A DNA stretch of 63,140 bases, the filler included, from Reticulomyxa filosa (lineage: Eukaryota; Protista; Foraminifera): assembly GCA_000512085.1 (NCBI GenBank). It is 21 parts of 21 records of this genome, joined end to end, with 100 filler letters (N's around TTAATTAATTAA, not from the genome) between each part and the next. Parts side by side here need not be neighbours in the genome. Positions count along the whole stretch, not along the records: positions 4,388 to 14,853 come from ASPP01006259.1; 20 more parts are not named here. One strand, given 5' to 3'. Below, in pieces: positions 4,288 through 15,957 of the stretch (position 1 is the first letter of the stretch; each line of letters opens with the position of its first letter). Under the pieces are notes generated by a model. The model made no database searches. It was not told the origin of the DNA and saw only the letters and a list, made by a program, of their open reading frames with translations. A program made the position numbers and the translations under genes.

Positions 4288-5289
4288 NNNNNNNNNNNNN
4301 NNNNNNNNNNNNNNNNNNNNNNNNNNNNNNNTTAATTAATTAANNNNNNNNNNNNNNNNNNNNNNNNNNNNNNNNNNNNNNNNNNNNTAATTTTTTAGTA
4401 TTTTTGCTTGTTTCCATCAAAAAAAATTGTAAAAAAACTTTTTTTGGAGTCAACAAGAATTTTTTTGTTTTAATTTGTAGTTTATTCAAAATTATAGGAA
4501 GGGTAATTTGAATGTACAAGAACGTACAATTGATTAGTCCATAAATACGTTCAAGAAAAAGGTAGTCATGATTTTGTCGCAATTTTGTGGGCAATAAAAG
4601 AAAATAAAATTGATAATTTTCCATTATTCATCCAACCTCTCAAAAGTACAAAATATTAACATTTTAACACACTTTATCCTTATTCCAATAATTTCCAAAA
4701 ACACAAAAGGGGAAATAAGAATTCAGTTTACTTATTTTCATAATCACCAGCCTCTTGGGAACGTTTTTCCCTTTAAAATGTAATTTAGTAAAGAAAATGT
4801 TCTGCTCCGTTTCTTACTTTTCTTTGTCAGTCAAAACGTGAAAAAATTATTTTCGAAAAATCAATATTGTTCTGAATAGAACAATCAATTGATTATTACT
4901 TAATGCAGTCAAACTGACCGAAATATTTTTGACAATATCCTTCATTATTCTTAAAAAAAACTTAACATCTTCCATTTTACATCATCAAAAACGATCTTAA
5001 TCAAAAAACAAAGAAGTTGAAAAATGAGAACCCTTAAAAATAGGAAGCAAACTTCAATACGACTGGCTTTCAAAAAAGCTGAGTCGTTTTTTTATTTACT
5101 ATGTGCAATTTGTGATCTGTATTTTTTCTGTTTCGAAGAGCACATAATATTATTTAAAATCTTTGAAGTATTGCCATTTTCATTGAATCTTTTCAAAGAA
5201 TACAACAGGTATAGAAAAAGTTTGTAAAAATCGGATAAAGAAAAAAGATGTTAATAAATTTGACAGGCAAACAGCAAAGTAATTTCATC

Positions 5290-5589
5290 GATAATGGACA
5301 TAAGTGTCGTGTAACTTTTGTTGAATATTCATCATTTGTAGAAGATATTAAAATTGATGATAGTTCAAATGTAATATGCTCTGGGTCATATGATAATACA
5401 ATTCGTTTTTGGGATATTCGATCAAATGAGAAAGAATTATATGTGGTCAAAGAAGACGATGAAGATAATGGAATATTATGTTTTAAATCCTTAAAATTAA
5501 AAAAAAGAAGAAAAAATAATCATCATCGTGGTTGTGAAATTAATTTGTGTTATGGTTCGTTTAATGATTTAATTCATATTTGGGGATAG
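5290..5589 (+). pseudogene. 3' remnant of the expanded WD40 family
   Basis: SSNVICSGSYDNTIRFWDIRSN...LCYGSFNDLIHIWG* matches the C-terminus of 58051-59124. The upstream repeats are missing. Confidence 0.75.
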
Positions 5590-5996
5590 TATCATTTTTT
5601 TAACAATAGGAAATTCAATCAAATAAATTAATATATATTTCAAGCATTTCTATTTTCCAATTAAACATCAATATTGTTATGATGAAAATTTTAAATCTCT
5701 TTCAGAAGCTTTACATCACGTAGATATAATTTTAAAAATATCACACATTTTTCTTTTCATGTGTGTTAATTACTAAAATTGTTTTTGTTGAAAAATAATG
5801 AAAAAAGATATTATTGTGGTATTGGTCTATGTTATGGTTCAGATAAATGCCCCATTCGTGAACACATATTAATGATTTTTAAACTGTACTACTATTCTTC
5901 ATTTCATAGATTGATTTTTTTTTTGAAGATTTTTGTTCTTTGAAAAACAAGAGAATGAATATTCTTTCAAAATAAAAATATACAAAATATAATAAC

Positions 5997-7043
5997 TCAA
6001 TTGTACCAATACAAAATTACAATCTTATCTTTTTCCATACATTCAAAAGGGATCATATTTGAATAAATTAATGATGGAACTTTCTTTACCAGAAAAAAAG
6101 TAATAGCATCAATTTTTTCACTTCTTTTTTTGCTGTTAATGTTTCTTCATTCCATTCACCTAATACACTATTGTATATTTTCCATGATTCTTCAAAATAT
6201 GTACATGCTGTTTTATCTTTTCCTATTTTTTGATAAATATATCCTATATTCCAATAAGAATCTGCAACATTTTTATTTATATTCCAAGTTTTTTTTATCT
6301 TTAAAGCTTTTTCATGACATTCAATTGCTTTATCATGTTGTCCTTTATGAAAATAAGGAATTCCTAAATCATCATATGAACACGCAACAAAGGGATGATT
6401 AACTCCAAAAATTTTTATTCGAATTACTAAAGCTTTTATATAATATTCAATTGCTTCATCATATTGTTTATTTTTATCATATCCATTACCAAAATGATCA
6501 CATATATTTGCAATCCAAGGATGATTAATTCCAAAATGATGTAAAAATATTTTATCCCATTCTCCACATATAATTCCTAAAAAAGTATATAAATCTGCGA
6601 CAAAAGGATGATTTGAACCAAAATTATCAATACAAATTTGTAAATTTTGTTGTGCATAAATTAATGCATTATCAAAAAGCTTTTCTTGTAGACATTGCTT
6701 TTTTTTATCTTCGAGATCTATCCAATATTATTAATTTTCTTTTTATTAAATATATCCAATAATCTTCAATTTGTTTTTTTGCAATACTATTATCATTTAT
6801 TAATGTATAAGTTGAATTTTTATTTGCATTCGAATGTATTTTATTTTTCCATTCAGAAGTGTTATTTGTAATAACAATTAAACCTTGTTCATTTTTTTCC
6901 ACCATTCTGTTCACTATTTTTGCTGCTTCTACGTTTGAGTCTATCCAAGATTTACTCCAATGTTTCTTCGAATTTAAAGTCTCAAAGGTAATTGTGTTGT
7001 CCGTAGTCAAAAACTCCTCGCATTTGTTTTCACTTGTATCCAT
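5997..7043 (-). pseudogene. Kinesin-light-chain-like TPR repeat gene with frameshift/internal deletions
   Basis: N-terminal ORF 6705-7043 shifts into a start-less open frame (~6718 to 5997) encoding FGSNHPFVADLY, FGINHPWIA..YDEAIEYYIKAL, FGVNHPFVACSYDDLG..HDKAIECHEKAL. The first TPR is internally truncated. Confidence 0.75.
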
Positions 7044-7713
7044 CTTTCAAAGATAATATTGATGGGATTTTTATTAAAAAGTTTTTTTTTGACTGAGTTT
7101 TAAATCGAATAGTACTCGTATTCTTTCTAATAATAGTACTTAACAAAATTTTGGCTCTAAAGATGTTTAAAATAGTGATTGGAGGAAAAAGTTATTCCAT
7201 AAAAAAGTACAACGGGTAAAACTTCACTGTCTGAATAATGTCCAATAGATAATGTAATTGCTTGAGCTTTTTCGTTGGCCAGACACATCCTTTGGCAAGA
7301 ACAACAACGGCAACTAAAACGAGTGGAGAGCGTAACGTTTTTTTAGTACTATGTGCCTTAACTTTTTGACACTGACTCTCAGTCCTCTCAATCATTTTTT
7401 TTAACTTTTTCATCAAAACAATAAACGTACTACCCTTTTTCATATTCTGACTAGCTTATTTTTCAAAGATAACTTGATTTCTGTGTTAATCACAAAGTCC
7501 ACTGGCAAAGGCGTTCTTAATCCTTGACAAAGGAATTTGAGACGGAAATGCTTTTGGTTTAAAATTTAACAGAGACTAAAATAATCAAAGCATAAAAAAT
7601 GTTTCAACAACAAAAATTTGTCTCCGAAAAAGCGCAGATTTTTTTTCTATAAAAAACTCTTCTCCATATTTATTTTTTTTTTGAAAAAAAATATCGATTA
7701 CTGGAAAGAAATA

Positions 7714-10700
7714 ATGCGTGATTTTGAGGTCGGTTTGCTTTTAAATGTTGCGAAGATAACTTTTCATTCCGTTTGTGCTTTTTGTGAAAACAAGGTTTCA
7801 ACCCGTTGCTGTTATTACGAACCAATATTGTCACTGATAAATCCGATGCGGCATCATGAAGAAGTTATTGATCGAAGTTTTAATGTGTTAGTTCAAACAT
7901 TATGTTCTCCTTTTAGAAGCACGAGTAACGAGGCCAATATTAATGATACGAATACCATAAAATGTCGCGGAGGAATGCAAAATGATAATGTTGGAAATAG
8001 CGAAAGTCGAAAGTATGCAAAAGAAATAAAGACATTACTTCGACTATTTGGGAGCATAGCTAACAAAGAAGAGTTGCAACAAAAAATAGAATATTACAAT
8101 GGGAATATCGAATTAGTAATTAAAGATGTTGTCCAACAATCGATTGAAAAAGAGGTGTAAAAAATATACAACCAGATATCTTTGTACTGTTAAATTGATC
8201 ATTTTACCTTTTTTTTTGTATAAAAAAAAAAACGAATACATCTGAATTGAAAGGCAAAGGCAGTAAATTGGAAAATATGGAACAGGTAAAAGAGAGTTGC
8301 TATATTTTGTGTCACAGTATTGTTTCATTTTGTTGTTTTTCAATGAAATAGAAACAACCGCAAAGAACTCGAGCAAATACAAGCAAGAATTCAAGCAAGA
8401 ATTTACAAAAAGAGATGGAAAAAACCGAAATCGGAGACACAAAACCAGGGATTAATTTGAAAGGTTATTGCAGTAATGATACTTGTTTGGCGTCAAAAGC
8501 AAAATTACCTGTTTGGATTAACATTGAATTTGCCAATATTAAATTTGTTTCAAACAAGACTTGCTTCTCTTGTCCTGATTGTAAAAGACCAACGGTCACA
8601 TCCATTATCAAAGCGATGTTTTACAATTCTGAACATTCCATTTGTGCAATTGGAGATACGATACCTGTGAAGGATAACAATTATCAATGTTCATATGTAA
8701 TCAAATCTGGACTGTCATATGAATTAAAGGCAAGCAAAATTAGACAGCATGCAAAGAGCATTGAAGATTTGAGAGAAAGGAGTGAAAATGCAATGAATAG
8801 CGTTGAAATTAAGAATTTGGTCGCAGAATTGCAAAAATATGACATCACAGTTGTGAAACCGCCTAGTTTGAAAGGAAATGACAGATTATTGGAAAAGATC
8901 AAAGCTGATTATGATGGTGATTTTAATCAAGCATTTGATATTGGAAGATTTACCATCTTATGTGATAATCCAACCAAATTACAAACTGCAGTGGCAGTGA
9001 TAAAGAAAGCAGAACAATTCAATTTAATCGTTTCAGAAGACAAGGATTTCTTTGACAAACAATCCAAGACGCATCACAGATTTCATAATATTAAATTGTA
9101 TGTTCCAAATCATGACGTATATATTGAAATGCAGGCAACATTGAAGAATTTTACAACATTGGAAGGATATACTGTCATTGAAAATCCAAAATTGAGTCAT
9201 TTATTTTATGAACACATTCGAGCATGGAAGCCTAATAATCCGTCAGAAGAGGAATTAAAACAAGCAAGTGATGAGACTTTGGCCAAAATCAACGATATAA
9301 TTTGTGAATGGCTTGACACAAAAGAAATCAAAAAAATCTCGAATCGTTATAAACCACATTCCGAAATTCAGTTATTGAAACCTCCACAATTGAAAGGATT
9401 GAATGAAGAACAAATCAATTCCAAAAAGGATATTACATTAAAATTGGCCAAATTTGTATATGATCAACTGTGTAAATTCAATCCAATGAGAATGAAAGGA
9501 CAAGCTATTTATGTGATTTTATTTGAATATTTCAAAAAATATATTATGGGTGAATCAAATCCGGCAAGTTGTGCTGATGTAATATCCATGTTGAATCAAT
9601 CAAGAAAGCAAGAACTAGAAGAAGACACGACCATGCTACAAGCCCTTGAGACATATATTCCATTGCAAGCAAATAACTATCCATACACGAACGATAATGA
9701 CAATGAAAAAAATGATTCATATGATTGTAATCAACATGTAATTAATTTGTTAGCAGAAGAAAAAGAGGAAAAAAGTGAACGACAAAAGCAAAAAGTAATT
9801 ATATTACAAGGGAAATCAGGATCAGGGAAAAGTTTGTTTTGTCGTCATTTAGAAGAAACTTTGTGGGAATCATATGCAAATGGCTCCACAATGTCTATTC
9901 CTGTTTATATCTCATTACCAAAATTTTATAATGAATTAAATGAAAAGCAAATCATTTCTCAAGCTTTACAAATGAAACAAATCAACAAAGAAATAATAGA
10001 CGTAATTCGTGAAAATATTTCATTTGTGTTTATTTTGGATGGATTTGATGAAATATTTGACAAATATAACAAAAATAACCATGATGAAAGATATTTTTTT
10101 TCTCGTTTCAATTTAGGTGAATGGAATGCAAAAACCATAGTTAGCTGTCGAAGTCATGTATTAAATGATGAAGATATTAACCAGGTTTTAACTGCCTCAA
10201 ATAGCACAGCAATGACATATTTGTGGCCTTTTTCAAAGGCACAAATGAAAGGATATATTGACAAATTTGTGAAGGTGAATAAAAAAAACAAAATGAATGA
10301 CAATTTGGATTGGACAATACAACAATATGAAGAAACATTGAACAATTATCCAAATTTGAACAAAATGATGGAAGAACCTTTTTTACTTCGAATGATATTA
10401 ACTGTATTACCATCGTTAATGAAGCAACATCCAGCGGGGACAAAAATATCCAAAGCACAAGTGTATGAAGCATTCAATGAACAGTGGATTGACATTCACA
10501 TAAAAAACATTTCAAATAAATTATCAGAATTAAGAATTCAAACAAATACTAAAAAGATCAAAGCAGCCTTTTATCAGTATTGTCAAGATTTAGCTTTTGA
10601 GATGTTTGTCCAAGGAAATCAGGTTGCAACAGAAAATCATGACACAAAATATGTGGACAACACAAGTTTGAGTAAATTGGATCCAACGATAGAAAAGATT

Positions 10701-13501
10701 AATGAAAAAATAAAAGTGAAAACGAATGCTATTGAAAATCCGGCTATGAAAACACAAGACGTTTGGGAAAAGTATTTCAATGGGGATAGCGTTGCAAAAT
10801 ATGTATTGCGAAGAGTTGGTGATGACAAATACCAATTTTTACATAAATCATGTCAAGAATACCACGCGGCACAGAAAATTATATTTGATATCATTTCATG
10901 GACACCCAATGTTATCAATGGTAATATTGATAATCAAGAATTCCAACAACAGTTTGAAGCACATGTCCAAAATTTGTCTATTAATAATAAATTGTTAAAT
11001 GAGGAATTGGGGATTATCCAATTTATTGCAGAAAGAGTTCATGATATCAATCCAATCTTTGTAAATTTGAAACCACGACTATTCCGAATCATTGAAACAT
11101 CAAAAGGAAATGAGAAAAATAAAATTGCAGCAGCAAATTCCGTCACCATACTTAATTCAGCAAATGTGAATATGCATAACCGAGATTGGAGCAATATCAA
11201 AATTCCTTCTGCAATCTTGGATCATGCATTTCTTGAAGGAACCAATTTCAGTAATGCCAATTTGGATAATGTAAGTTTTGTTCAAGCTTGCTTAAGCAAG
11301 GCCAAATTCACAAAGGCATCAACGAAAGGAATTTACTTTGGGGAATATGCTTATTTGGAGCATTCATCTGCTGTAAATGGAGCTCAATTTTCACCAGATG
11401 GGACAAAAATTGTGTCATGGTCAAATGATAATACGATCCGAATATGGGACGCATCATCAGGAAGGCAGCTTCACTTATTGAAAGGACATTCAAATTATAT
11501 AAAAGCAGCACGATTTTCACCCGATAGTTCTAAAATTGTATCGGGATCATGGGATAAAACAATTCGAATATGGGATGTATTATCAGGTCGGCAAATTCAA
11601 ATATGGGAAGAGGATTCAAATTTCGTAAGCCCACAATTTTCACCGGACAATTCTAAGATTGTATCGTGCTCAGAAGATCAATCTATTCGAATATGGGATG
11701 TGTCATCTGGAGCACAAATCCGAGTATTGGAAGAACAGGAGGAATTTGTTAATGTGGTGCAATTTTCACCCGATAATTCCAAAATCGTGTCATGCTCACA
11801 AGACAAAACCATTCGACTCTGGGACGCGTTGTCCGGAACACAGCTCCAACTATTGGAAGGACATTTAGAAGATGTAACCGGAGTGCAATTTACATCCGAT
11901 GGATCAAATATTATATCATACTCGCGAGATGAAACCATTCGAATGTGGGATTTGTCTTCAGATCAGCCGATCCATATATTTGAAGGACATTCCGAGGGGA
12001 TAAATGGAGTGCACTTGTCATCAGATGGCTCCAAACTTTTGTCATATTCCGATGATAAAACAATCCGAATATGGGATCTGCTGTCCGGAAAACAACTTCA
12101 GACGTTGGAAGGGCATTCTGATAGTGTAAAAGCAGCGCGATTTTCATCGGATGGTTCCAGAATTGTGTCCGGCTCGGCTGATAAGACGATCCGAATATGG
12201 AACGTGACATCAGGGAAGCAGCTCCAAGTATTGGAAGGGCATTCCGATGCAGTGAATGGTGTGGAATTTTTTCCAAAAGAGCCCAAAGTTTTATCATGTT
12301 CGAATGATGGGACAATTCGAATATGGGACATAGCTTTGGAAAGGAAGATCCAGCTAGCGGAAGGACATTTAGATATTGTAACCGGCGTGCAATTTTCCCC
12401 AGACAATTCCAAGATTATATCATGTTCAAAGGACAAAACAATTCGATTGTGGGATGTGCAATCAGGAAGACAAATTCAAATATTTGAAGGACATTCAAAA
12501 TCTGTGCGTGGGGTAATATTTTCACCAGACTGTTCCAAAATTGTGTCTTATTCGTACGACAAAACGATGCGAATATGGGATATGTTATCTGGAAGACAAA
12601 TATCAAACACCCTTTTGGTGTCTGAAATTGCCATCCAATTTTCGCCAGATGGCTCGAAGATCGTATCGAGTTCATTAAATGACGTCATCGAAATTCTGGA
12701 CACATCGTCCGGTAAAAAAGTGCATTCATTGAGTGGACATTCCGCGGACTAAACGGAGTACGCTTTTCGCCAGATGCCTCCAAACTTGCGTCCTTTTCAA
12801 AGGACAAAACAATCCGATTGTGGGATATGTTGTCTGGAAAGCAACTCCAAGTATTTGAGGGACACTTGGGAGATATTAAGAGTGTACAATTTTCGCCCGA
12901 TGGCTCCAAAGTTTTGTCATGTTCGACGGATAAGACGATTCGACTATGGGATGTATCTTCCGGAAAGCAACTTTTGGTACTGACTGAACAGTCCAGCTGG
13001 GTAAGGGGAGTCCAATTTTCTCCGGATGGTACCAAGATCTTGTCCTTTTCCTATGACAAAACTATTCGTCTGTGGAACGCGCTATCTGGAAAGCAGCTGC
13101 ACACATTGGAGGGACATTCGGATGGAGTGCGAGGAGCACAATTTTTGTCTGACAATTCCAAGGTTATTTCATACTCCAATGACAAAACGGCTCGAATATG
13201 GGACGTGTCTTCAGGACAACAGATTCAAATATTGGAAGGACATACTGGAGATATAGAGGGAATGCAATTATCACCGGATGGTTCAAAGATTGTGTCGTAC
13301 TCGCAAGACAAAACCATTCGATTATGGGACATTGATAGCACTAAACTTATTGATGCACATGATATTACTTCGCTGAAGTGCATTTGGAAAGTAGGGGGAC
13401 AAAGTTTTGGTTTATCAATGAACAATAGTGTTTGGGAGGGTTCAAATGGTTTGACACCTCAACAAAAAATGCTCGTGGAACAACGTGGTGGGAAATTTTG
13501 A
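7714..13501 (+). CDS. NLR-like STAND protein: UBA-like / Cys4 module / RelA-SpoT-like nucleotidyltransferase / NACHT / pentapeptide repeats / 16x WD40; 1-bp frameshift at ~12746
   Basis: Exons ~7714-8154, ~8225-8285 and 8352-13501. RSH-like motifs SLKGNDRLLEK, DIGR, KDFF..HHRFHN, IEMQAT, SHLFYE (~8850-9225). Walker A GKSGSGKS (9810-9833), Walker B FILDGFDE (10029-10052), VSCRS, PFLL, FLHKSCQEY. Pentapeptides AILDH-AFLEG-TNFSN-ANLDN (~11211-11330). WD40 repeats ~11355-13335. Confidence 0.9.
11355..13335 (+). repeat. Tandem ~126-bp WD40-coding repeat array (16 units)
   Basis: Recurrent GH....V..V.FSPD.SKIVS.S.DKTIRIWD..SG unit; 16 IRxW(D/N)-type motifs counted across the frameshift. Confidence 0.9.
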
Positions 13502-13700
13502 TTTGTGTGTATTGTTTTGTTGTAAATAAGATCTGCTTGTGTGAGTTTTTTTGGCCAGCTGCAAATAAATGAAATTTTTTTTGCATGAGAAACTTTTTTT
13601 TTTTTTAAAGTGGTGGGCTTTGAACTTGGTCAGTAGTTTTCACCCTTTTTTTTTTGCATAATTTTCGAAAAGTATAAAAAAAAAAGTTGCACCATTTGAA

Positions 13701-14808
13701 ATGAGTTATCAGTCAAATACAAAACGTCCTCGACAAAGACGTCATAGCAGTCTGATAGTGCGTCAGGACTATCTTTCTCAGTTGGACACAAGTAACTGGC
13801 AAGACGAAAGCGTGCAACAGCAACAACAACAACAGCAACAGGACTATCAGCAGTATGATAGCCACTATCAAGGCAACCCAACAGGTTGGTTGCGTGGAAA
13901 AGATGGAGGATACCATCGACGTTCTCGACCAAGATATGTGAGATACCGTCGAAGACCCAATCAAGGAGGATTCAATATCGGCGCAGACACTAACGACAAC
14001 AACAACAACAACGACACGAATAATAATAACAACAATAACAACCGATCGAAAAATAAACGAAGAAGACGTCGAGCACCAAACCGAAGAAATCAAAAAGGCA
14101 TCGGAGGCAAAGTGTGGCGACCCAAGCCAAATCAACCACCGCACGACAAAGTTCACGAAAAAGACACCTCCAAAGAGCAGACCGTGCTCATAACTCCGTC
14201 TGTAAGTATTTCAATCCATTTTTTGTGTGTGTGTGTGTAATATGCTAACATTTGAAGGTATATAAAAGAATTTATGCAAATAACACATATAAATAAATAT
14301 GTATAAATATATACATATATATATATATATTATATATACACATATATGTATGTCGTGTGAAACGCAGGAACAGACACAATCAACGCAGGAACAGACACAA
14401 TCAACACAGCCGACACAGTCGACACAGTCGACACAATCGACAGTGAGCGAGCAAGCCCCTCAAGTCACCTCCGTCGAAACAGCGACAAAGACAGCGACGG
14501 AAGCAACAAAGCCTGCGACGAAAGAAGAGGAAAAGCAACCTGAGAGTGTGCCACGACAAAAGCTTCCAGTCACTGTCCTTTCTGGGTAAGATTTTGTAGT
14601 GTTTGCATTTTTTCCGCATTCCAAAAGAGACAATGTCTTTTCTATGTCCTCTCCAAATTCTTTTTTCCTCTTTCTTTCTTCGTCTTTCAATGACTACGCA
14701 CACATACAAACAGATTTTTAGGAAGTGGCAAAACCACATTGATGGAACACATACTCAAGAATAAAAAGGGGCTCAAAGTTGCGGTCATTGTCAATGACAT
14801 GAGCGAAC
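13701..14808 (+). CDS. COG0523/CobW (YciC/ZigA-like) G3E GTPase metallochaperone with long disordered N-terminal extension; 3' end lost at contig break
   Basis: Introns 14202-14367 and 14586-14713 (GT-AG, in phase) give ...[40 protein letters not shown]. Confidence 0.85.
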
Positions 14809-15957
14809 GTTAAAAAAAAAAAAAAAAAAAAAAAAAACCTAAAAAATTTTTTTNNNNNNNNNNNNNNNNNNNNNNNNNNNNNNNNNNNNNNNNNNNNTTA
14901 ATTAATTAANNNNNNNNNNNNNNNNNNNNNNNNNNNNNNNNNNNNNNNNNNNNAAATGTTGTTTTTTCATGGAGAAACACAATCATCTATATAAGGTAGC
15001 ATTTTAGGTGTCAACTTTCTTTTTTATCCTACTGTATTTGTAGATACTAAGAGAAAGTTATTTTTTAGACGAAAAAAATATTAATTTGTGACAGTGATCC
15101 AGATAATACAACATGACACAATACTAAATATAATGAATTATTTTGAAAAATAAAAATTTATACAAAAAATTTGCGACAGTATATGAAAATTGACACTATA
15201 TAATAGTCGAGTAAATGAAAAAAAATTAAAACAATAATAAAGCAAAAACGTACAAAATAATAGAAAAAAATATTAAAAAGTTAAATTTTAAATGTTGCAT
15301 TTTTTTAAAAACTATGAAATATACATTTTTTTAATAAAATAAAAATTCATTTTATTAAAAAATGAAGTTGTGGGATTTGTTACTATGCTAGACTGTCACA
15401 AAATACGAAAATATCTTTCTAAAAGATATTTTCAATAAAAAAAACGAATAAATTTAAGTCAATAAAAATGGAATGGTAACAACAACAAAAAGAGAAATAA
15501 AAAACGGAAGTCATAATAAAGTTTTGAGAAACAGGATTTCAAGATTCACTTGAACATTGGTACTAAATAGCCGGACTCGCTACAAAATACACTTTTTAAA
15601 AAGTATATGCATAACTTGACGATTCCTAAAAAAGAAACAGATTCAAAGGTTTAATTGTGCCAATATATTTTTGATTTATATGCATTACTGAGAAATTTTT
15701 AAAGATCATATGAAAGAATGATGTTTTTATCCATACTAAAAAGTTATTAACCAATTCATTTTTAAAAATTACAAGATTTGTAGATATGAATAAAAAATTT
15801 CTACATTAGCAGCCGAGGCACAATGAAGAGATTCGCAGTATGCAATGAACAAATGCATGCATTCGAATTTTCCAAACTAAGCAAAAAAGATTGATCGCAT
15901 CATTTTTGTTCAAAAAAAAAAAGTTTTGAGGGATCAGAAAAAAAGAATGCGATATGT

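Follow-up and report, generated by a model that had tools for sequence, protein, structure and literature searches.

In this work, we describe a gene of the foraminiferan Reticulomyxa filosa, RFI_08036, and the large family to which it belongs, whose members join a domain with the fold of RelA/SpoT-type (RSH) nucleotide synthetases to a NACHT NTPase and a long array of WD40 repeats. The gene was studied in a stretch of DNA of 63,140 nucleotides (nt), referred to here as the window, made of 21 parts of 21 records of the assembly GCA_000512085.1 joined end to end, and all positions are those of the window. The part that holds the gene, from record ASPP01006259.1, covers positions 4388-14853 (10,466 bp) and is AT-rich, with a GC content of 0.23-0.43. 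Its main open reading frame (ORF), 8415-12752 on the plus strand, encodes 1445 amino acids (aa) that are 100% identical to the GenBank protein RFI_08036, a model of 1481 aa. From the N to the C terminus, the modules encoded by the gene are a weak CUE/UBA-like helical segment, an all-beta module with four cysteines (Cys4), the RSH synthetase-fold domain, the NACHT domain, pentapeptide repeats, and 16 WD40 repeats. This is the tripartite layout of STAND/NLR proteins, with an N-terminal effector, a central NACHT domain, and C-terminal repeats. By analogy with such proteins, RFI_08036 would be a STAND/NLR-type receptor from a family of more than 100 genes, whose RSH effector is fired by the sensing of non-self or altered self, and this is the reading towards which we lean, with moderate confidence. 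The features of the gene are the following:

7714-8156, plus strand: probable exon 1, encoding the N-terminal region, proposed from an ORF starting with the ATG at 7714 and from homology to paralogue N-termini, the end of the exon being inferred
8264-8285, plus strand: possible mini-exon encoding KLENMEQ, its putative boundaries placed by GT-AG sites and reading frame only
8427-8741, plus strand: Cys4 all-beta module, a probable zinc-binding beta-sandwich, from cysteine conservation and an AlphaFold2 model
8727-9404, plus strand: RSH synthetase-fold domain, Tas1-like, putative effector, ORF aa 105-330
8937-8939, plus strand: codon of D175, in a DxGR motif, the Asp of the RSH motif DxxGxR
9126-9128, plus strand: codon of E238, in an ExQ motif, the Glu of the RSH motif ExQIRT
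9795-10271, plus strand: NACHT P-loop NTPase, from Pfam (Walker A, 9810-9833; Walker B, 10035-10052)
11163-11345, plus strand: pentapeptide repeats, from Pfam, between NACHT and the WD40 array
11346-12749, plus strand: frame 3 part of the WD40 array, holding repeats 1-11 and the opening 16 residues of repeat 12
12744-12752, plus strand: frame break in WD40 repeat 12, where frame 3 meets a TAA at 12750-12752 and frame 2 continues
12752-13501, plus strand: remainder of WD40 repeat 12, repeats 13-16, a C-terminal tail of about 56 aa and the stop codon, in frame 2

An RSH-type nucleotidyltransferase had been placed at about 8850-9225 by the original prediction, made from the DNA sequence without database searches. 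This assignment is real according to four independent lines of evidence, namely the paralogues, an exhaustive protein search, profiles run against the PDB, and structure. In RFI_08036 itself, the Pfam family RelA_SpoT (PF04607) matches ORF aa 153-240 with 19.0-20.6 bits (E ~6e-4), and the same family is matched at E <=0.01 by the domains of 26 out of 28 paralogues (best E 4e-7), with 13-15 genomic copies attaining its gathering cut-off of 27 bits. A phmmer search of the domain against 1.84 billion representative proteins resulted in 88 matches; those from outside Reticulomyxa share 26-38% identity with the query and many of them have RelA_SpoT at the corresponding place, one of them, from a bacterium of the Kofleriaceae, carrying the annotation of RelA/SpoT domain protein. 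The relatives bearing RelA_SpoT also carry toxin-delivery modules (eCIS_core/DUF4157, Phage_Mu_F, DUF4781, Ntox3) or TPR/LRR repeats, and the closest non-foraminiferal relatives of the domain are C-terminal domains of bacterial polymorphic toxins. When a profile built from the RFI_08036 domain and its phmmer relatives (profile A2) was compared with the PDB, Tas1 was matched across the whole domain with an E of 2e-24, together with RelP/YwaC (3e-10), RelSeq (4e-7), and RelQ (3e-6). Tas1 was also the sole match under E 0.1 of a profile made of paralogues only (E 0.016), and a single-sequence phmmer search of the PDB gave just a marginal match to it (E 0.24). An NCBIfam search of the N-terminal 480 aa returned nothing useful.

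The structural evidence comes from two AlphaFold2 models, one of the RSH domain alone (pLDDT 85.0, pTM 0.78) and one of the domain together with its upstream module (pLDDT 85.6), for both of which RSH synthetases rank first among the structure matches. Comparing such a model by Foldseek was one of the checks proposed along with the original prediction, and the RSH fold is what it recovered: the top 50 matches are all RSH enzymes, led by Tas1 (E 2e-8, TM 0.54/0.61). VIA-align, a second structural comparison, gave Z scores of 13.7 for RelP, 13.5 for Tas1, 13.2 for RelQ, 12.2 for Rel, 11.4 for an exported Streptomyces small alarmone synthetase, and 10.5 for CapRel, with generic nucleotidyltransferases of the Pol-beta fold, such as TUTases and CD-NTases, at or below 8.2. 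Judged from these models, the predicted RSH synthetase fold is separable from that of generic Pol-beta nucleotidyltransferases. In addition, a fold search of the model for 8352-9404 against the ESM Atlas returned Nucleocytoviricota and diatom clusters with an RSH-like fold, among them a 173-aa, mainly eukaryotic (diatom-labelled) cluster, with a TM by target of up to 0.76, and a TPR-linked cluster.

The presence of an RSH fold would say little about function if the active site had decayed, and a rival explanation holds precisely this: the domain would be inactive as an enzyme and act as a nucleotide-binding, oligomerisation, or adaptor module recruiting other effectors. We consider this improbable. 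Conservation was counted over 49 R. filosa paralogues and 17 distant relatives. K153, D175, and R178 are kept in 49/49 and 17/17 sequences, respectively; R222, E238, and Q240 in 48/49 and 17/17; K161 and Y265 in 48/49 and 16/17; R157 in 47/49 and 15/17; and K210 and H262 in 46/49 and 16/17. D175 and E238 are the two acidic residues singled out beforehand (D at nt 8937, E at nt 9126), at positions held in RSH enzymes by the Mg2+/catalytic acidic residues. In the hidden Markov model alignments, D175 stands opposite 'KDLAR' of Tas1 and 'HDIAG' of RelP, E238 stands opposite 'EIQV' of Tas1 and 'EIQIRT' of RelP, and E238 is the sole invariant column in the alignment of profile A2. Thus, as read from the alignments, the ATP/Mg2+-binding motif residues of RSH enzymes are kept across the family; all their positions are conserved in the distant toxin relatives as well as in 46-49 of the 49 paralogues, which is the pattern expected of an enzyme under purifying selection. 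That the closest relatives are catalytic toxins also speaks against an inactive domain. On the other side, most copies lie under the Pfam cut-off and the acceptor-side motif has changed to HHRFH, where other RSH enzymes have GYRD or GYRS. Because of this replacement, the acceptor pocket differs, and the product and acceptor specificity are not predictable from sequence.

The Cys4 module, of about 100 aa, lies directly upstream of the RSH domain. Its presence had been foreseen in the original prediction, and its four cysteines (C19, C24, C53, and C56, in ORF numbering) are kept in 48-49 out of 49 paralogues. In the AlphaFold2 model, the module consists entirely of beta strands, with a pLDDT of 93-95. 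No Pfam family was matched by it, its sole structural match is a generic beta-sandwich (Z 6.0), and short homologues of it are confined to fragments from R. filosa; a feature search of the ESM Atlas returned unnamed, mostly rotifer clusters of low recognition value. The module is also found just upstream of the RSH domain in two metagenome relatives, P0069 (ENA) and P0090 (soil, AAFX01), which share 39-48% identity with the RSH domain. Since both relatives carry the two modules, the Cys4-RSH pair behaves as an evolutionary unit, and this unit exists beyond the sequenced R. filosa strain. As a variation on the same theme, the paralogue RFI_08856 (P0001) has two tandem Cys4+RSH units (aa 26-340 and 392-722) before one NACHT domain.

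Further upstream, nt 7981-8157, corresponding to the last ~58 aa of exon 1, encode a conserved helical segment, where a UBA-like cassette had been proposed. This proposal stands in part: the Pfam CUE family is matched by 9 of 22 paralogue segments (best E 2e-4), the RFI_08036 copy being without a match, and a profile of the segment run against the PDB gave marginal matches to the UBA-like domain of USP25 (E 0.22) and to EF-Ts (E 0.78). The UBA/CUE-like character of this segment is therefore plausible but unproven.

The remaining modules of the chassis agree with what had been read from the DNA. The Pfam NACHT domain is matched with 44.2 bits (E 2.4e-11), above its cut-off of 26.7, with an intact Walker A motif (GKSGSGKS, aa 466-473, nt 9810-9833) and an intact Walker B motif (LDGFDE, aa 541-546, nt 10035-10052). 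The pentapeptide repeats reach 30.2 bits against a cut-off of 20.2. The WD40 family is matched with an E of 5e-104 on the main ORF and of 5e-45 on 12818-13498, and the count of 16 repeats, each of 40-42 aa, results from 11 complete repeats in the ORF, one split by the frame break, and four in the next frame. RSH, NACHT, and pentapeptide plus WD40 repeats stand in this order, and with it the effector-NACHT-repeat layout of STAND/NLR receptors that had been claimed for the gene was recovered.

RFI_08036 is far from being a single case in its genome. A genome-wide count had also been suggested with the original prediction, and a profile of the RSH domain run against the R. filosa assembly (101.9 Mb) gave at least 151 matches, with only 150 of 571 first-look candidates scored. 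Around 90 of the matches span the full length and are free of stops; internal stops occur in about 15 of the 150 scored. The protein database holds 58 annotated paralogues of RFI_08036, with 59-89% identity and all from R. filosa. The family appears to evolve by gene birth-and-death. For NACHT, at least 102 matches were obtained from 315 candidates, and these fall into two score classes, the higher-scoring of which lies on contigs without an RSH-domain match. In three members of that class (C15901, C11739, and C12889), the upstream ORFs or N-termini are without a Pfam effector domain. These three represent a second class of NACHT-WD40 proteins with no RSH domain and Pfam NACHT scores of 62-83 bits, where NACHT lies no more than ~130 aa into the long ORF in two members and, in the remaining one, begins before the first ATG.

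The size and state of the family bear on whether it would be a conventional signalling or regulatory set of intracellular STAND NTPases, standing apart from biological conflict and reporting, for example, stress or nutrient status by means of an alarmone-like messenger. Such a set would suit the classical part of RSH enzymes as regulators of stress, and R. filosa has no known conflict phenotype. However, more than 100 diverging copies, many of them fragments or with stops, indicate birth-and-death evolution, and the toxin-type relatives of the RSH domain, together with the focused variability of the repeats described below, suit conflict better than housekeeping. We regard this explanation as highly improbable, slightly more so than an inactive domain.

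If the proteins act in conflict, the question arises of what the conflict is about. R. filosa is a fusing, multinucleate (syncytial) network, and the same architecture could serve allorecognition, as with HET-E/HNWD of Podospora, with death setting in locally once two genetically different individuals have fused. Several features recall fungal HNWD/NLR proteins, namely the NACHT-WD40 chassis, the large and diverged family, and the focused WD40 variability (PMC4986451). This variability was observed over 384 paralogue repeats, where high entropy is focused on repeat positions 15, 16, 18, and 34 on an otherwise conserved scaffold. Moreover, the nearest chassis outside R. filosa is fungal: the closest sequences to the NACHT-pentapeptide region are Mortierellomycota proteins and unnamed metagenome sequences, with 27-29% identity. 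Nonetheless, the similarity between the WD40 repeats reaches only 73-76% in the DNA, in contrast to fungal incompatibility genes, whose repeats are typically near-identical, and no feature found here tells this role apart from pathogen sensing. We thus take allorecognition as the specific role to be unlikely, although less so than the two explanations weighed above.

Regarding the structure of the gene, the original prediction had treated 7714-13501 as one gene, which stands for its start and not for an unbroken frame. The upstream ORF, 7714-8157, has homologues at the N-termini of at least 25 annotated paralogues, where it precedes the Cys4 module in the same order as at the RFI_08036 locus, and this makes a gene start at 7714 reasonable. 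In the GenBank model, the start is instead the ATG at 8277, a 30-nt intron lies at 8322-8351, and the end is the TAA at 12750-12752. One in-frame GT-AG path leads from 7714-8156 through 8264-8285 to 8352 onward, its 5' junctions being inferred, and the KLENMEQ mini-exon resembles a 'KLEN.EQ' segment of paralogue models such as P0003. This path was joined solely to check the reading frame, the searches and folds having used separate pieces. A bacterial contaminant contig was considered and rejected, since the locus is AT-rich and the exon order is common to dozens of R. filosa paralogues.

At the 3' side, the TAA at 12750-12752 closes frame 3 within WD40 repeat 12, which resumes in frame 2, open up to the stop at 13499-13501. 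The break is flanked by 16 and 25 residues, that is, the 42-aa period minus one codon. As the WD40 period is kept and there is no space for an intron, the break represents a one-base indel and not an intron; an intron at 12750-12818 was accordingly rejected, the repeat running gapless into the other frame. This indel may be an assembly or sequencing error or a recent inactivating mutation, and through the frameshift the RFI_08036 copy may be a recent pseudogene. In that case the locus would be dead and would yield no more than a protein cut short after WD40 repeat 11, as would be in line with the stop inside repeat 12 and the resumption of the repeat in the other frame, with the internal stops of about 15 of the 150 scored genomic copies, and with the GenBank model terminating at the same stop. 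Against it, the sequence is open and well conserved on both sides of the stop, and a single-base error of a draft assembly would appear identical. A dead locus is a serious possibility, even if not the one that we favour, and it concerns this copy and not the family.

Two other coding regions were observed in the same part of the window. Downstream, 13701-14853 (plus strand) belongs to a separate gene, with a low-complexity Q/N/R-rich ORF at 13701-14240 followed by further exon-like ORFs; its P-loop segment at 14712-14807 matches Pfam cobW (CobW/HypB/UreG nucleotide-binding) with 43.9 bits against a cut-off of 20.7, and the gene extends past the contig end. Upstream, an isolated ORF of 113 aa at 5248-5589 (plus strand) contains a single WD40 repeat (28.5 bits), weakly like the WD40 arrays of the paralogues, and is probably the remnant of another, upstream NACHT-WD40 gene.

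Proteins of this kind have been listed before in other lineages. RelA_SpoT-NACHT-WD40 proteins are catalogued in fungi, for example in Gaeumannomyces graminis (Dyrka et al. 2014, PMC4986451), which agrees with the original claim that RelA_SpoT is among the N-terminal domains of fungal NLRs, of whose annotated N-termini it makes up less than 1% (PMC4986451). In bacteria, NACHT proteins defend against phage, and alarmone synthetases are found among their N-terminal effectors (Kibby et al., bioRxiv 10.1101/2022.07.19.500537). An effector-NACHT-WD40 protein with an RSH domain is therefore of a known kind. However, we know of no organism in which an NLR of this RSH-effector type has been characterised, the fungal and bacterial examples being only catalogued. 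The R. filosa proteins share with the fungal RelA_SpoT NLRs the order RSH-type effector, NACHT, and WD40, as well as an expanded, variable repertoire. They differ from them in lineage, Rhizaria versus Fungi; in the divergent, Tas1-like and mostly sub-cut-off RSH domain, the two sets having been compared by architecture only; in the preceding CUE/UBA-like and Cys4 modules and the pentapeptide stretch before WD40; and in the number of copies with one effector, more than 100 as opposed to a share below 1%.

Tas1 from Pseudomonas aeruginosa (PDB 6ox6) is a (pp)pApp synthetase toxin delivered by type VI secretion. It is the best match of the R. filosa domain both by sequence and by Foldseek, ties for the best in VIA-align (Z 13.5), and has the motifs LKxxxRxxEKI, DxxR, ExQ, and GHxxYE in common with it. 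The identity between the two is ~19-21%. Furthermore, Tas1 is a secreted bacterial toxin with an immunity protein, whereas the R. filosa domain lies inside a eukaryotic NACHT-WD40 protein. CapRel (PDB 7ztb, 8pu1) is a fused toxin-antitoxin phage sensor acting as a tRNA pyrophosphokinase. Together with the toxic small alarmone synthetases, it shares with the R. filosa domain the RSH-fold catalytic domain (Z 10.5 for CapRel and 6.0 for FaRel2), and in both cases a toxic RSH domain would be restrained by an attached regulatory domain until the arrival of the trigger, as can be presumed for R. filosa. In CapRel this regulation relies on a C-terminal antitoxin, while R. filosa would use the NACHT-WD40 switch and perhaps the Cys4 module; in sequence, the R. 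filosa domains are nearer to Tas1 than to CapRel.

The bacterial bNACHT/Avs proteins have the same tripartite arrangement of effector, NACHT, and sensor, with alarmone synthetases among their effectors, but the R. filosa gene is eukaryotic, contains introns, has WD40 and pentapeptide sensor repeats, and is known from sequence alone. As for the chassis, the proteins of Mortierellomycota (Linnemannia zychae and Mortierella spp.) have the same NACHT-pentapeptide-WD40 order, with ~96% of 546 aa covered in the named fungal proteins (E 4e-39 to 5e-36), and differ in that no RelA_SpoT is among the Pfam matches listed for them. What is new here is the lineage, Rhizaria, with a Tas1-like, mostly sub-cut-off RSH domain, and also the fixed partnership with the Cys4 and CUE/UBA-like modules, the pentapeptide spacer, and the more than 100 copies with one effector. 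The original statement that such a system had no characterisation in Rhizaria holds as far as the literature search reached: no paper linking Reticulomyxa with NACHT was found, and the one naming it together with NLR deals with animal apoptosis, the genome paper, which may mention a NACHT/WD40 expansion, lying outside that search.

Under the receptor reading that we favour, the WD40 propellers, variable at few repeat positions, would bind a non-self or altered-self ligand. Ligand binding would lead to nucleotide exchange and oligomerisation of the NACHT domain, and this oligomerisation would activate or de-repress the RSH domain, which would then move pyrophosphate from ATP to an acceptor. The likeliest acceptor would be a nucleotide of adenine or guanine, with (pp)pApp or (p)ppGpp as the product; the alternative would be the 3' end of tRNA. 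Either way, the activity could cause ATP depletion or a translation block and, with it, the arrest or death of the affected part of the syncytial cell. Since the Cys4 module always adjoins the RSH domain, it is likely to be its regulatory or substrate-binding partner, while the CUE/UBA-like segment may tie the protein to ubiquitin. Either a pathogen or, following cell fusion, foreign cytoplasm could act as the trigger, two options that the data presented here do not separate.

Several points weigh against this receptor reading. The functional part of the claim, that is, a non-self sensor with a nucleotide messenger or pyrophosphate-transfer toxicity as its output, would rest on analogy only, and we know of no R. 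filosa pathogen or incompatibility system. The RelA_SpoT score of RFI_08036 falls below the Pfam gathering cut-off, and its HHRFH stands in the place of the GYRS/GYRD motif of other RSH enzymes. This copy has a frame break inside its sensor array, and the entropy pattern of the WD40 repeats is descriptive and not a test of positive selection. Finally, no dedicated hydrolase or immunity partner was found in the search of the assembly. Strong matches to HD_4 (174 bits) and to canonical RelA_SpoT (79 bits) were seen only on contigs shorter than 1 kb (C7084, C8583, and C32270), which most likely represent bacterial contamination or a separate (organelle-type) long RSH outside the NLR family, and not a partner.

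A more specific version of the receptor reading can be put forward quite tentatively, as rather less probable than the general one. More than 100 NLR-type receptors would share one Tas1-like output, either runaway synthesis of (pp)pApp or related nucleotides or the pyrophosphorylation of tRNA, shutting down or sacrificing part of the giant syncytial cell. The effector would have originated from a bacterial polymorphic toxin and be controlled by the Cys4 module as a lineage-specific part, and the system would be the first eukaryotic defence based on alarmone chemistry. As the R. filosa RSH domain is closest to toxins that kill by ATP depletion, its product and its activation mechanism are directly testable with the isolated domain.

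Even with these reservations, one RSH effector dominates an R. filosa family of more than 100 genes, and by analogy this pattern suggests a large, unstudied system of non-self surveillance. If this is true, Rhizaria would join the lineages in which NLR-type immunity or allorecognition works through enzymatic effectors, and the family would give another example of a toxin domain from bacteria put to use by a eukaryote as an effector. It would also link the toxic alarmone chemistry of interbacterial killing and phage defence to the cell-autonomous defence of eukaryotes.

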